A DNA stretch of 64,000 nucleotides from Macrostomum lignano (taxonomy: Eukaryota), in NCBI GenBank assembly GCA_002269645.1, contig NIVC01001397.1:1-64000 (forward strand), given 5' to 3'. Within the stretch, counting starts at the first letter, position 1, and each line of letters starts with the position of its first letter. The notes beneath the pieces were generated by a model. It was not told the DNA's origin. It did no database searches and worked only from the letters and a program-made list of their open reading frames with translations. The position numbers and the translations under genes were made by a program. Shown here piece after piece: positions 39,740 to 53,155 of this stretch.

Positions 39740-42700
39740 ATGTCAAGCGCCGAGCAGATCTGCGAGAAGCTCCGGAAGCTCATCGAGACTGGCAGCGAGA
39801 CTGACGCCATCTGTCTGGTCAAACAGGCGCTCAACAGCGTCAGCGCTGAGCAGCTGCTGGAGCACAGGTTCCAGGAGCCCGTCGGACTGAAGCGACCTTC
39901 AACTGGTCGGCAGTTGCGGGTACTGCGGCCCAACGCGCTGATGCTGGCAGCGGCCGGCTGGTTCGAAGCCACGCTGCGCGCCTTGGCTCGAACTCGGGCC
40001 CGCCTGGACGAAGGTTTCGACGTTGAAGACGAGAGCTCGGCGGCCGAGCAGTACGGGGGCGTCACTGCACTGATGCTGGCCACCATTGCAGGTGAGCTGA
40101 GTGGCGGGTCCTGATGATCATTCAAAATAAAAGTACATCTGACCCGCTGAGTGGCAGCCCACTCGGCACTGTCACTGCAATCTGCAGCTTTGTGTGGCGC
40201 ATCACTAAGCAGCCCTCCTATCCGCTCCAAGGATCGCCTCCTATCCGCCCCCCCAAGATCGCCTCCTATCCGCCCCCCCCCAAGATCGCCTCCTATCCGC
40301 CCAAGATCGCCTCCTATCCGCCCCCCCAAGAATCGCCTCCTATCCCCCCTCCCAAGATCGCCTCCTATCCGCCCCCTCCCAAGATCGCCTCCTATCCGCC
40401 CCCTCCCAAGATCGCCTCCTATCCGCCCCAAGAATCGCCTCCTATCCCCCCCCAAGATCGCCTCCTATCCGCCCCCCCCCAAGATCGCCTCCTATCCGCC
40501 CCCCCCAAGATCGCCTCCTATCCGCCCCCCCCAAGATCGCCTCCTATCCGCCCCAAGAATCGCCTCCTATCCACCCCCCCCAAGATCGCCTTCTATCCGC
40601 CCCCTCCCAAGATCGCCTCCTATCCGCCCCAAGGATCGCCTCCTATCCACCCCCCAAGATCGCCTCCTATCCGCCCCCCCCCCCCAAGATCGCCTCCTAT
40701 CCGCCCCCCCCCCAAGATCGCCTCCTATCCGCCCCCTCCCAAGATCGCCTCCTATCCGCCCCCTCCCAAGATCGCCTCCTATCCGCCCCAAGAATCGCCT
40801 CCTATCCACCCCCCAAGATCGCCTCCTATCCGCCCCCCCCAAGATCGCCTCCTATCCGCCCCCCCCAAGATCGCCTCCTATCCGCCCCAAGAATCGCCTC
40901 CTATCCACCCCCCCCAAGATCGCCTTCTATCCGCCCCCTCCCAAGATCGCCTCCTATCCGCCCCAAGGATCGCCTCCTATCCGCCCCAAGGATCGCCTCC
41001 TATCCGCCTCAAGGATCGCCTCCTATCCGCCCCCAAAGATCACCTCCTATCCGCCCCCCCAAGATCGCCTCCTATCCACCCCAAGGATCGCCTCCTATCC
41101 GCCTCAAGGATCGCCTCCTATCCGCCCCCAAAGATCTCTTATCCACCCCCCCCCAAGATCGCCTCCTATCCGCCCCAAGGATCGCCTCCTATCCGCCCCC
41201 AAAGATCTCTTATCCACCCCCCCCCAAGATCGCCTCCTATCCGCCCCAAGGATCACCTCCTATCCGCCCCAAGGATCGCCTCCTATCCGCCCCAAGGATC
41301 GCCTCCTATCCGCCCCAAGGATCGCCTCCTATCCCCCCAAGGATCGCCTCCTATCCGCCCCAAGGATCGCCTCCTATCCGCCCCAAGGATCGCCTCCTAT
41401 CCATCCCAGGGACCGCCTCCTATCCATCCCAGGGACCGCCTCCTATCCATCCCAGGGACCGCCTCCTATCCATCCCAGGGACCGCCTCCTATCCATCCCA
41501 GGGACCGCCTCCTATCCATCCCAGGGACCGCCTCCTATCTATCCCAGGGACCGCCTCCTATCCATCCCAGGGACCGCCTCCTATCCATCCCAGGGACCGC
41601 CTCCTATCCATCCCAGGGACCGCCTCCTATCCGCCCCAAGGATCGCCTCCTATCCATCCCAGGGACCGCCTCCTATCCGCCCCAAGGATCCCCTCCTCCC
41701 CCAAGGATCGCCTCCTCCCCCAAGGATCGCCTGTACACTCTCTGTGCCTTGTGGGCTGGCCCTCATTGCCCCCGAGGCAATCCTTGTGCACGAGCCCCAA
41801 ATTAATGCGGCAAGCGCGCGGAATCGAGTCTTGTTACCATCGGCTTCTGCCGCTCCCAGGCCGCGAGCCGTTCATGCGAGTCCTGATCGACTGCGGCGCC
41901 GACCTGAACGCTGCCAACAGCCTAGGCGACACGCCCATCTACCAGGCCTGCCTAGAAGGTCACGTGACCGCGGCCGAGCTGCTCATCCGCAGCGGCGCCT
42001 ACCTCAACCTGCCGAACGCGTCCGGCATCACCCCGCTGATGATCGCCTGCTTCACCGGCGCCGAGGCCGTCGTCGAGTTGCTGCTGCGCTACGGAGCTCG
42101 CGTGGATTGTCGCGACGTGGCCGGCAAGACGGCCGCTCACTACTGCTGCCCGGCCCGCGCCCTGGACTGCCTGCGCCTGCTGGTGCGCGCCGGGGTGCCG
42201 CTTGAGGCCGACGGCAGCGACGGCACCAGCCCGCTGATGGAGGCCGCCTACCAGGGCGCCAGCGACCAGCTGCTCGACCTGCTGCTTTCTGCGGCCCCGG
42301 AGTCCGCGCTGGCCGCTCGCGACTGTCGCGACCGCGGCGCCCTGTTTTACGCTATCGAGGGCGGCAGCCTGCCGACGTTTCAGCGGCTCCTGCGCGCCGG
42401 CGCTTCAACTCGAGCGGCGCAGCCGAGCGGCGTCACCCTGCTGATGACGGCGGCTCTGCGCTATCGCCGGCGACTTGCCGAACTGCTCGTCGACCTGCTG
42501 CGCAACGAGGCCGACCGCGACGATGAGGACAGCGACGGGATTCGGGCTCGCGACGCCGAAGGTCGAAACGCGCTTTTTTACTGCGTCGCCAATCCGGAGC
42601 CGGACCTGCTGCAGCTGCTGCTGGACAGCGGACTGCCGGCCGAGAAGGCAACGGACGGGTCTGTCTGTCTGTCTGTCTGTCTGTCTGTCTGTCTGTCTGT

Positions 42701-51700: not shown

Positions 51701-53155
51701 CTTCTTTTTTAGTTTGAGGAAAAATATCCCCCCACTGCCGGAGAGGCTGCATGTGTCCAATACATGTATTTGATGCAGTGAAACTCTGCGAGCGCGGATG
51801 CCAGCAGGGATTTAGGGGCTTAGGCCGCCCCACTCAACAGATGACTAGGCTGACAGGCACAGATGGCTTCTAATGCAATCCGATACAGTGAGACGCGAAC
51901 TGCCCCCCCCCTTGATGATGCGGTGCCTCACAAATTCAAATGAGAAGCCAGAGGTGCGGCGCCTTCATGTCGGTCTTCAATTTTTGGCTTGACATTTCAC
52001 TTTACTACTCCGTGCGATGCAGGTGCAAAATATGAGCTACCTGTTATACATGGGAGCTGCCTGTTAGACATGGGAGCTGCCTGTTAGACATGGGAGCTGC
52101 CTGTTATACATGGGAGCTGCCTGTTAGACATGGGAGCTGCCTGTTAGACATGGGAGCTGCCTGTTAGACATGGGAGCTGCCTGTTAGACATGGGAGCTGC
52201 CTGTTAGACATGGGAGCTACCTTTTAGATACGGAAGCTACCTGTTAGACACAAACCAAGCTACCTGTTAGACACAAACCAAGCTACCTGTTAGACACAAA
52301 CCAAGCTACCTGTTAGACACAAACCAAGCTACCTGTTAGACACAAACCAAGCTACCTGTTAGACACAAACCAAGCTACCTGTTAGACACAAACCAAGCTA
52401 CCTGTTAGACACAAACCAAGCTACCTGTTAGACACAAACCAAGCTACCTGTTAGACACAAACCAAGCTACCTGTTAGACACAAACCAAGCTACCTGTTAG
52501 ACACAAACCAAGCTACCTGTTAGACACAAACCAAGCTACCTGTTAGACGCAAACCAAGCTACCTGTTAGACACAAACCAAGCTACCTGTTAGACACAAAC
52601 CAAGCTACCTGTTAGACACAAACCAAGCTACCTGTTAGACACAAACCAAGCTACCTGTTAGACACAAACCAAGCTACCTGTTAGACACAAACCAAGCTAC
52701 CTGTTAGACACAAACCAAGCTACCTGTTAGACACAAACCAAGCTACCTGTTAGACGCAAACCAAGCTACCTGTTAGACACAAACCAAGCTACCTGTTAGA
52801 CACAAACCAAGCTACCTGTTAGACAGCACAGCCAGCCTACCACCCCGCAGAGCTGGACCAGTCCCAGCGAGAGACAATCGAGGCCTACTCGAAGCGCCTG
52901 GGCGAAGTGGACCTCGCCGAGCTGGCCAGCCAGATGGCCAAACGTGACGTCATTCTGTGCGAGCACAATGCCAGAGTGATGGAGCTCATGAACCAGCGGG
53001 CCGAGCGCCGGGACTACATGCTGTCCCTGGTTATTCGTCGGGGCAAAACTCGAATTCAGGACTTCCTCACCGAGTTGAAGCAGTTCAATCCCCAGGTTGC
53101 CATGGAGCTCAGAGCGAAACTGTTTGTCAAGCCGGAGAGCGAGTTTATGGTCTGA
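39740..53155 (+). CDS. Large ankyrin-repeat protein with C-terminal CARD-like death-fold domain, 7 exons, 1226 aa
   Basis: Phase-consistent exons 39740-40091, 41860-42658, 43372-43940, 47444-48691, 48762-48901, 49347-49614, 52851-53155 sum to 3681 nt with no internal stop. About 25-29 ankyrin motifs. The last exon (..[61 protein letters not shown]) follows the CARD helical pattern. The CARD call is by eye. Confidence 0.85.
40215..41730. repeat. ~21-27-bp intronic tandem repeat (CCAAGATCGCCTCCTATCCGCCCC) grading into CCATCCCAGGGACCGCCTCCTAT
   Basis: Periodicity with a variable C-run; fills intron 1 of the ANK-CARD gene. Confidence 0.95.
42659..43335. repeat. (GTCT)n microsatellite filling intron 2 of the ANK-CARD gene
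   Basis: Direct; interrupted by GTTT and CTTAGT variants. Confidence 0.97.
44145..45485. repeat. 15-bp purine-rich intronic repeat (GGGAGACAGGGAGAT) and variants
   Basis: Direct periodicity. Confidence 0.95.
46130..46935. repeat. 14-bp intronic repeat (TGTCTACTCTCTCC and variants)
   Basis: Direct periodicity. Confidence 0.93.
47080..47150. repeat. (CT)n microsatellite
   Basis: Direct. Confidence 0.95.
48915..49275. repeat. 26-bp intronic repeat (GTCGCTCAGGTGTGTCACTGAAATAT)
   Basis: About 13-14 copies in intron 5. Confidence 0.92.
49621..51115. repeat. 19-bp intronic repeat (CCCCTCTCTGACCCTGTCT), ~78 copies
   Basis: Starts immediately after the GTGAGT donor at 49615. Confidence 0.97.
52035..52825. 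repeat. 20-bp (CATGGGAGCTGCCTGTTAGA) then 23-bp (CACAAACCAAGCTACCTGTTAGA) tandem arrays
   Basis: Unit switch near 52250; ends ~25 nt before the acceptor at 52850. Confidence 0.95.

Follow-up and report, generated by a model that had tools for sequence, protein, structure and literature searches.

A Macrostomum lignano ankyrin-repeat protein with a possible CARD-like module encoded by its last exon

In a 64,000-nucleotide stretch of the Macrostomum lignano genome (the window), we found seven exons that join into one plus-strand open reading frame of 3681 nt, which encodes 1226 aa and has no stop other than the terminal one. The protein consists of a short N-terminal cap, an ankyrin solenoid of ~26 repeats (aa ~60-1125) and a ~95-aa C-terminal module that comes wholly from the last exon and for which a divergent CARD-type death-fold domain is the likeliest identity. 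We hold this reading as a whole tentatively, with somewhat less than even confidence; the best description of the product is a lineage-specific ankyrin scaffold with a C-terminal CARD-like module.

Gene model and ankyrin array

Three features of the locus are established: how its exons are arranged, the ankyrin array, and the fact that exon 7 is coding in character. All seven exons are bordered by GT..AG splice sites. The features are given below, with a slash at each splice junction.

39689-39691, plus strand: in-frame stop upstream of exon 1
39740-40091, plus strand: exon 1, with the start codon, a ~60-aa N-terminal cap and the first ankyrin repeats; donor CAG/GTGAGC, phase 1
40214-41732: 23-mer array
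41860-42658, plus strand: exon 2, ankyrin repeats, GC3 0.85; acceptor CTCCCAG/, donor GTCTGT, itself the opening unit of the (GTCT)n array
42659-43333: (GTCT)n array
43372-43940, plus strand: exon 3, ankyrin repeats, some degenerate, and a Gly/Glu-rich insert
44145-45485: 15-mer array
46130-46943: 14-mer array
47444-48691, plus strand: exon 4, the largest, 416 codons of ankyrin repeats; acceptor AATCCCAG/
48762-48901, plus strand: exon 5, ankyrin repeats; donor CAG/GTGAGA
48917-49275: 26-mer array
49347-49614, plus strand: exon 6, the last ankyrin repeats; donor TCC/GTGAGT, phase 1
49615-52850, plus strand: intron 6, 3236 nt, with a unique segment (51118-52033) that holds no coding-like ORF
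49620-51117: 19-mer array in intron 6
52034-52825: 20-mer and 23-mer arrays in intron 6
52851-53155, plus strand: exon 7, a 101-codon C-terminal module and TGA stop; acceptor CCACCCCGCAG/AG, a tandem CAG/AG site
52862-53113, plus strand: CARD-like helical core, exon-7 residues 4-87
53741: ATTAAA downstream of the exon-7 stop
53999-54004, plus strand: first AATAAA 3' of the exon-7 stop, a consensus match only
56499-56870, strand opposite to the ankyrin gene: next gene, AATF/TRAUB

This model reproduces exactly the seven-exon, in-phase frame proposed in the first-pass annotation, which had also described the introns as filled with minisatellites. The description holds for five of the six introns, which are occupied by tandem arrays, but not for intron 4, which is 70 nt long and free of repeats.

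The large ankyrin array is solidly predicted by profile searches. Pfam Ank_2 matches 14 stretches of the protein (E 4.1e-85; score 280.9 bits, cut-off 27.3), and Ank, Ank_3, Ank_4 and Ank_5 are also far over their cut-offs, with E values across the ankyrin families of 4e-85 to 4e-34. A profile made from the protein's own repeats scores ~26 of them, with a few more degenerate ones besides, in agreement with the earlier count of 25-29. The closest PDB sequence matches of exon 4 are ankyrin-1/2, NOMPC, TRPA1 and DARPins, with E values of 9e-18 to 3e-10 for ankyrin-1/2, NOMPC and TRPA1.

The repeats also provide a check on the exon joins. According to the self-profile, five of the six junctions (1 to 5) fall inside 33-aa ankyrin repeats that splicing restores, an indication that the gene model is more than chance. 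Scored repeats span or abut each of these junctions: one spans junction 1, the repeat containing RTCLHYACQ/ spans junction 5, and in exon 3 the split junction codon G and the residues that follow it restore a repeat. Only junction 6, between exons 6 and 7, is beyond a check by repeat continuity. Exon 4 acceptors at 47342, 47396 and 47414 were rejected because the sequence that they would add scores as non-coding, the open frame 5' of 47444 giving -0.67. Exon 6 acceptors at 49290 and 49309 were rejected since they would add a Pro/Ser-rich insert within a repeat; use of the acceptor at 49347, which is preceded by a long pyrimidine tract, makes the repeat whole. A search of the unique sequence within introns 3 and 6, and of the regions upstream and downstream of the gene, turned up no missed exon.

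Exon 7 and its probable connection to exon 6

By its codon bias, exon 7 is real coding sequence. The codon log-odds are +0.61 per codon in frame, and both other frames give about -0.8; GC3 is 0.79 against a regional GC of 47%, and the frame-specific bias is like that of exons 1 to 6. Moreover, exon 7 is the only coding-like stretch on either strand between 49.6 and 56.4 kb; it lies in a 110-codon open frame found on the plus strand in that frame alone, and a good acceptor sits directly after the minisatellite. The listing of the last exon as a separate short ORF, reported previously, was confirmed: it appears as an 82-aa ORF with a GTG start at 52907-53155.

Neither the first nor the last exon is present in the public protein collections searched. 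The search with exon 1 found nothing. For exon 7, no homologue was found among 5.8 billion clusters, exhaustive phmmer against 1.84 billion representatives gave 0 matches, and phmmer against PDB sequences returned chance matches only (E 1.6). Public protein sets of M. lignano can thus lack genes that have introns filled with minisatellites between their exons. Neither the neighbouring PKA-RII gene nor its M. lignano UniRef twin has an exact entry, yet the PKA gene is represented, whereas the exon 1 and exon 7 peptides match nothing. Rfam found nothing in the whole window.

We infer that exon 6 is spliced to exon 7 across the 3.2-kb minisatellite intron. The exon 6 donor, GTGAGT, stands precisely where the last ankyrin repeat ends and fits the M. 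lignano cis-donor motif GT[G/A]AG (PMC8629364); it is in phase with the best exon 7 acceptor, a pyrimidine tract followed by CAG, and there is no alternative to this pairing. Retention of intron 6 would give a product that ends ...SLFRESPL at a TGA at 49629-49631 (tail 49615-49631). This stop, five codons into the intron, and the AATAAA at 51174, downstream of the 19-mer array and the single one in intron 6, would permit an ankyrin-only product.

The same two signals could mark the end of an ankyrin gene, with exon 7 as a separate ~100-aa CARD-only gene that is SL trans-spliced and possibly lies downstream in an operon. We regard this arrangement as unlikely. Operon spacers are inflated by repeats and the 35-nt SL ends in ATG (PMC8629364), and use of the second AG of the CAG/AG site (exon start 52853) would place this ATG in frame with the whole domain. 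However, trans-splicing at the CAG, the stronger acceptor and the one in phase with the consensus donor at the end of the last repeat, would place it out of frame, and initiation at the first internal ATG (52934) would lose the first 1.5 helices. The acceptor also departs from the reported trans-splice motif [T/C]TNCAG, and by chance alone roughly one AATAAA would be expected in 3.2 kb. Less probable still, and in our judgement very unlikely, is that exon 7 is an unexpressed chance open frame or decaying remnant and that the real gene is ankyrin-only. In favour of this is that no protein in the collections searched contains exon 7; M. lignano sequencing runs are apparently poorly represented in these collections, so the absence says little, and the codon bias and GC3, the confinement of the open frame to one frame of one strand and the acceptor right after the minisatellite all argue against it.

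Sequence and predicted structure of the C-terminal module

Among 24,736 Pfam families, CARD (PF00619) is the sole family match of exon 7. The alignment is nearly end to end, spanning profile positions 13-83 of 85, but its score of 16.1-16.5 bits is below the gathering cut-off of 23.9; the E value is 0.009-0.012 for exon 7 alone and 0.84 within the full-length protein. Shuffled and reversed controls gave unrelated Pfam matches at E 0.025-0.2, little worse than the real CARD match. Death (PF00531), DED and PYRIN were not listed for exon 7 at E up to 10, a range in which the HMMER filters drop many matches above E ~0.1. With hhalign, comparison of exon 7 to a validated CARD profile/alignment gave a probability of 25% (P 7.6e-4).

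On a CARD profile of our own, made from 14 sequences and validated on 93 PDB CARD sequences, exon 7 scores 14.9 bits; none of 5000 shuffles exceeded 13.9, and the reversed sequence reached 3.5. This score falls between those of RIG-I CARD1 (17.0) and RIG-I CARD2 (9.0), true CARDs from outside the profile, and DD, DED and PYD sequences, the FADD and RAIDD death domains included, are far below it at 2.7 or less. Permutation of the order of the six putative helices provided a stricter control, in which the native order ranked 5 of 1440 and one permutation scored higher, at 21.6 bits. This rank indicates that the CARD signal comes mainly from the last three predicted helices, and the strongest similarity is found in ~40 residues (exon-7 residues ~49-90; 52997-53122). 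Taken together as sequence evidence, these comparisons make the CARD call for exon 7 suggestive but do not establish it. The ~90-aa CARD-like helical tail described in the first-pass annotation is retained in part: it is a separate coding, all-helical module with CARD as its sole Pfam match, but with a sub-cut-off score and a low hhalign probability.

The six-helix bundle that had been expected of this module was not obtained. Two AlphaFold2 single-sequence runs gave helices at residues 3-18, 21-78 and 80-91, that is, a 58-residue helix with two short flanking ones in both constructs and with high pLDDT, and two Foldseek searches against the PDB found no match at E <=0.001. Such a helix is what might be seen if, with the gene model unchanged, the tail were a lineage-specific helical or coiled-coil tail for oligomerisation or docking and had no death fold. 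We consider this somewhat unlikely. It would accord with CARD matches that are all under the family thresholds and concentrated in ~40 residues, and with the fact that no homologues were found to confirm any family. However, the pTM values were 0.47-0.54, three of the five models had pLDDT <50, and single-sequence models are unreliable; a reliable model of exon 7 depends on an alignment, which the lack of homologues precludes. A coiled coil is further disfavoured by a heptad contrast that is not significant against shuffles (p ~0.06). True CARDs show a long amphipathic phase run at the same place as the one at residues 56-83 of exon 7, and because they behave alike, neither the amphipathic-phase nor the heptad analysis discriminates between the two folds. 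That CARD is the one family matched, with a score over that of every shuffle, also argues against a tail of this kind.

Proposed function and relation to known systems

In the preferred reading, that of an ankyrin scaffold with a CARD-like tail, the exon 7 module would fold as a CARD and the protein would work as a scaffold or adaptor. Its long ankyrin surface may be the site at which a ligand or partner protein binds, and the CARD-like tail may self-oligomerise or recruit another CARD protein. A role in immunity or apoptosis is pure conjecture, and since the tail resembles a CARD only weakly, a function as immune adaptor is plausible but falls short of proof. In M. lignano, where RNAi and transgenesis are available, an ankyrin scaffold ending in a CARD would be a concrete candidate for experimental work. 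Should the tail prove to be something else, the protein would simply join the other lineage-specific ankyrin-repeat proteins.

Published comparative work reports APAF-1 and a single CARD-caspase as retained in flatworms, and FADD and CRADD as missing; M. lignano has a CARD-caspase, PAA59014.1, and APAF-1 has been detected in platyhelminths (PMC11463336). Platyhelminths also have ANK-caspases, which carry an ankyrin prodomain and are restricted to parasitic flatworms (PMC11463336). Like the present protein, the ANK-caspases belong to this phylum and couple ankyrin repeats to the caspase activation machinery (here by the proposed reading), whereas the present protein, that of a free-living macrostomid, lacks a caspase domain. 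In a more specific proposal, the protein would act in the single CARD-caspase pathway as an ANK-CARD sensor or adaptor peculiar to flatworms and would take over the function of FADD and CRADD; it would be an activator of the ankyrin-domain kind that has been postulated for caspase pathways in flatworms, and the Caiap type of CARD+ANK protein would have been invented independently outside vertebrates. We consider this full scheme quite improbable.

An ankyrin array followed by a C-terminal death domain is found in ankyrins, ANKDD1A/B, NF-kB p100/p105 and Relish. The order of modules is the same here, with an ankyrin array and then, at or close to the C-terminal end, ~90 aa of death fold (putative in the present protein), but in those proteins the domain is of the DD subfamily (PF00531), for which exon 7 gave no Pfam match at E up to 10. 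Giant ankyrin solenoids, such as ankyrin-1/2 with 24 repeats, NOMPC with 29 repeats and TRPA1, are alike in repeat number and sequence; the spectrin-binding or ion-channel modules attached to them are absent here. If exon 7 were a separate gene, its ~100-aa product with a single CARD-like domain would resemble ICEBERG/CARD18 and COP. Unlike such CARD-only regulators, exon 7 has no start codon that lies 5' of helix 2, and BLASTP found no pairwise similarity between exon 7 and ICEBERG.

The closest architectural parallel cited in the first-pass annotation is Caiap, which was correctly described as a CARD+ANK adaptor, though its CARD is N-terminal and the family was not found in invertebrates. 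Caiap has ~16 C-terminal ankyrin repeats and orthologues across vertebrates, its ankyrin array binds caspase and its CARD self-oligomerises, and its authors found no invertebrate orthologue (PMC5662874). Both proteins would combine a single CARD and a long ankyrin array in one polypeptide with a proposed adaptor role, but in the flatworm protein, encoded by seven exons, ~26 ankyrin repeats come first and the CARD-like module last. The comparison revealed no sequence relationship between the two beyond generic ankyrin similarity, and the CARD match here is sub-threshold. If real, the CARD+ANK architecture of M. lignano arose independently of Caiap and would be the second of its kind after the vertebrate one.

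Window composition and the ankyrin-repeat gene

Macrostomum lignano is a free-living flatworm of the Macrostomorpha. Exons in the window are GC-rich (GC3 about 0.8), and the non-coding DNA is AT-richer and packed with minisatellites, more than 30 separate arrays filling a large share of it; their periods are 13-43 nt or longer, copy numbers run up to about 90, and the units are 85-99% identical. Because of these arrays, a mechanical ORF list shows numerous long but spurious ORFs on the two strands. The coding features of the window are as follows.

Genes and coding segments in the window
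1368-2852, minus strand: 494-aa ORF with coding-like codon usage and a Lys/Asp-rich low-complexity stretch (KDKDKNKD...)
3159-5570, minus strand: second ankyrin-repeat gene, an uninterrupted 803-aa ORF (Pfam Ank_2, E 7e-73)
7865-9094, plus strand: single-exon, intronless gene for a PKA type II regulatory subunit, with RIIa and two cNMP-binding domains
~18833-21901, minus strand: Cys-loop ligand-gated ion channel exons separated by minisatellite arrays
39740-53155, plus strand: the seven-exon ankyrin gene
56499-56870, minus strand: exon for the C-terminal TRAUB domain of a homologue of AATF (apoptosis-antagonizing transcription factor; Pfam E 4.9e-13)
60865-61662 and 62415-62846, plus strand: two exons of a TROVE-domain gene, TEP1/Ro60-like (Pfam E 4.5e-31 and 1.5e-40)

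The PKA product matches a UniRef M. lignano protein residue for residue, on which basis the window is assigned to this species, except in two small indel patches (a short frameshift-like stretch near aa 81-97 and a gap of 10 aa at 242-251). The patches look like gene-model differences and suggest that the public model or assembly differs there; the same search found at least seven more M. lignano paralogues with 49-68% identity. The 494-aa ORF, for which a Pfam search returned no match, may represent a gene of its own, specific to the lineage, or one exon of a larger gene extending past the window, and the Gly-rich C-terminus of the 803-aa ankyrin ORF has no CARD-like tail. The M1-M2 segment of the Cys-loop receptor resembles anion-selective GABA/glycine-type receptors. 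The AATF homologue converges tail to tail with the ankyrin gene, and its position beside a putative death-fold gene is probably coincidence. In the intron after the second TROVE exon, (CTGT)n is repeated in ~200 copies (62714-63507); intron 2 of the ankyrin gene also carries an array of this tetranucleotide, as (GTCT)n (42659-43333), and in both genes the array begins at the donor site.

The first-pass annotation had proposed a 1226-aa ankyrin-array protein ending in a CARD-like death-fold domain. By listing the GT and AG sites that surround the open frames and then testing the single remaining acceptor choice, we reproduced its seven-exon model exactly (3681 nt, 1226 aa, sole stop terminal). 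The donors are, in exon order, GTGAGC, GTCTGT, GTGCGC, GTGCGA, GTGAGA and GTGAGT, and the acceptors are CAG except at exon 6, where AAG follows an extended run of pyrimidines; the cis motifs published for M. lignano are GT[G/A]AG and CAG (PMC8629364). Tandem arrays dominate introns 1, 2, 3, 5 and 6, as had been claimed, and such arrays are a property of the entire window, not particular to this gene. The large ankyrin array is confirmed by Pfam (Ank_2, E 4.1e-85). A profile derived from the repeats of the protein itself scored 26 units, and at junctions 1 to 5 these cross the splice points or begin exactly there. This continuity is the strongest internal support for the gene model; chance in-phase joins would not restore 33-aa repeats. 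Among solved structures, exon 4 is most closely related to ankyrin-1/2, NOMPC and TRPA1, and from its sequence the gene can be classified as encoding an ankyrin-repeat protein. The exon-1 and exon-7 peptides have no protein match in collections that include M. lignano predictions, which therefore lack an annotation of these two exons at least.

Exon 7 and its probable link to exon 6

Between 49.6 and 56.4 kb, exon 7 (52851-53155) is the only segment, both strands considered, whose codon usage resembles that of coding DNA. Scored by a codon table derived from exons 1 to 6, its own frame reaches +0.61 bits per codon and the remaining two frames about -0.8, with a GC3 of 0.79 vs 0.63 and 0.32. 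The frame opens at 52823, straight after a 23-mer array with stops in all frames, and the best acceptor, CCACCCCGCAG, at 52851, matches in phase the GTGAGT donor at 49614. Codon scoring found no coding-like ORF in the unique part of intron 6, and the next gene downstream lies on the opposite strand. Given the coding usage, the in-phase acceptor, the lack of a rival ORF and the opposite-strand neighbour, membership of exon 7 in the ankyrin gene is the most economical reading, and splicing of exon 6 to exon 7 into one fusion protein is probable on these sequence features.

Two other arrangements have to be set against this fusion. The ankyrin gene and exon 7 could be separate genes, since an ankyrin-only product is possible (ending ...SLFRESPL, stop at 49629-49631, poly(A) signal at 51174) and M. 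lignano makes wide use of spliced-leader (SL) trans-splicing and operons, with an SL whose 3' end is ATG (PMC8629364). Exon 7 starts at a tandem acceptor, CAG/AG (52848-52852), the first site of which is in phase with exon 6, and the second AG would place the terminal ATG of the SL in frame. Both sites being usable in frame, a complete C-terminal module would result from cis- or trans-splicing alike. We consider two genes unlikely, and an exon 7 without expression, which would have to carry the observed codon bias nonetheless, more improbable still.

Likeness of the C-terminal tail to CARDs

For the exon-7 peptide, Pfam gives no family other than CARD (PF00619; E 0.009-0.012, aligned to profile positions 13-83 of 85), and shuffled and reversed controls gave unrelated matches at E 0.025-0.2. 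The score is below the gathering cut-off of 23.9 bits, so the gene is not assignable to the CARD family on present evidence; hhalign against CARD gave 25% probability, and pairwise BLASTP against ICEBERG gave no match. We also used our own profile of 14 human and nematode CARDs, which when checked against the PDB retrieved 93 distinct sequences, a CARD being present in 60 of 60 among the matches listed. Exon 7 reaches 14.9 bits on this profile in a colinear alignment across positions 4-88, compared with a maximum of 13.9 in 5000 composition-matched shuffles and 3.5 for the reversed sequence. True CARDs outside the seed score 45.8 (CED-3), 17.0 (RIG-I CARD1), 9.0 (RIG-I CARD2) and 0.2 bits (MAVS), and one DD, one DED and one PYD 2.7 bits or less, the RIG-I sequence having been verified against the PDB. 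The tail thus appears more CARD-like than other death folds and falls within the range of divergent genuine CARDs. In a control that rearranged the six putative helices and changed nothing else, the native order ranked 5th of 1440 and one permutation reached 21.6 bits, which indicates that most of the signal comes from a 31-residue block, putative helices 4 to 6.

Because the collections searched contained no homologues of exon 7, AlphaFold2 was run without an alignment. Instead of the six-helix bundle anticipated, two constructs gave three helices (3-18, 21-78 and 80-91; pTM 0.47-0.54), and Foldseek found no match to these models in the PDB. We do not take this as refutation: confidence is low for three of the five models, and true CARDs have, in the same place, the long amphipathic phase run that might speak for a single long helix. 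On balance we lean towards a death fold of CARD type for the tail.

Comparison with known adaptors

The most likely product is a scaffold or adaptor, in which the ~1060-aa ankyrin solenoid would offer a long protein-binding groove and the C-terminal CARD-like module would mediate homotypic assembly, by self-oligomerisation or by recruiting a CARD partner. Self-oligomerisation has been demonstrated for the CARD of Caiap, a vertebrate CARD and ankyrin-repeat adaptor (PMC5662874). In platyhelminths APAF-1 has been detected and FADD and CRADD have not, and among the proteins of M. lignano there is a CARD-caspase, PAA59014.1 (PMC11463336). We infer every step from sequence to function, and fusion, CARD and adaptor-like role taken jointly make a tentative proposal, with somewhat less than an even chance of being right.

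It is common for a death domain to follow an ankyrin array, as in ankyrins, ANKDD1 and p100/p105. The gene described here gave no Death-family match in Pfam, and the ANK-prodomain caspases of parasitic flatworms are a different type of protein. A full-text literature search for proteins combining CARD and ankyrin repeats found Caiap alone. As the precedent offered by the first-pass annotation, Caiap fits in its combination of domains but has the opposite domain order and 16 repeats. Its authors, who report it from cartilaginous fish to marsupials, found no orthologue among invertebrates (PMC5662874). If the tail is a CARD, the M. lignano protein would be a death-fold adaptor that carries a repeat sensor, with ANK first and CARD last, an order undescribed in the literature searched, and would come from a phylum from which caspase adaptors are partly missing.
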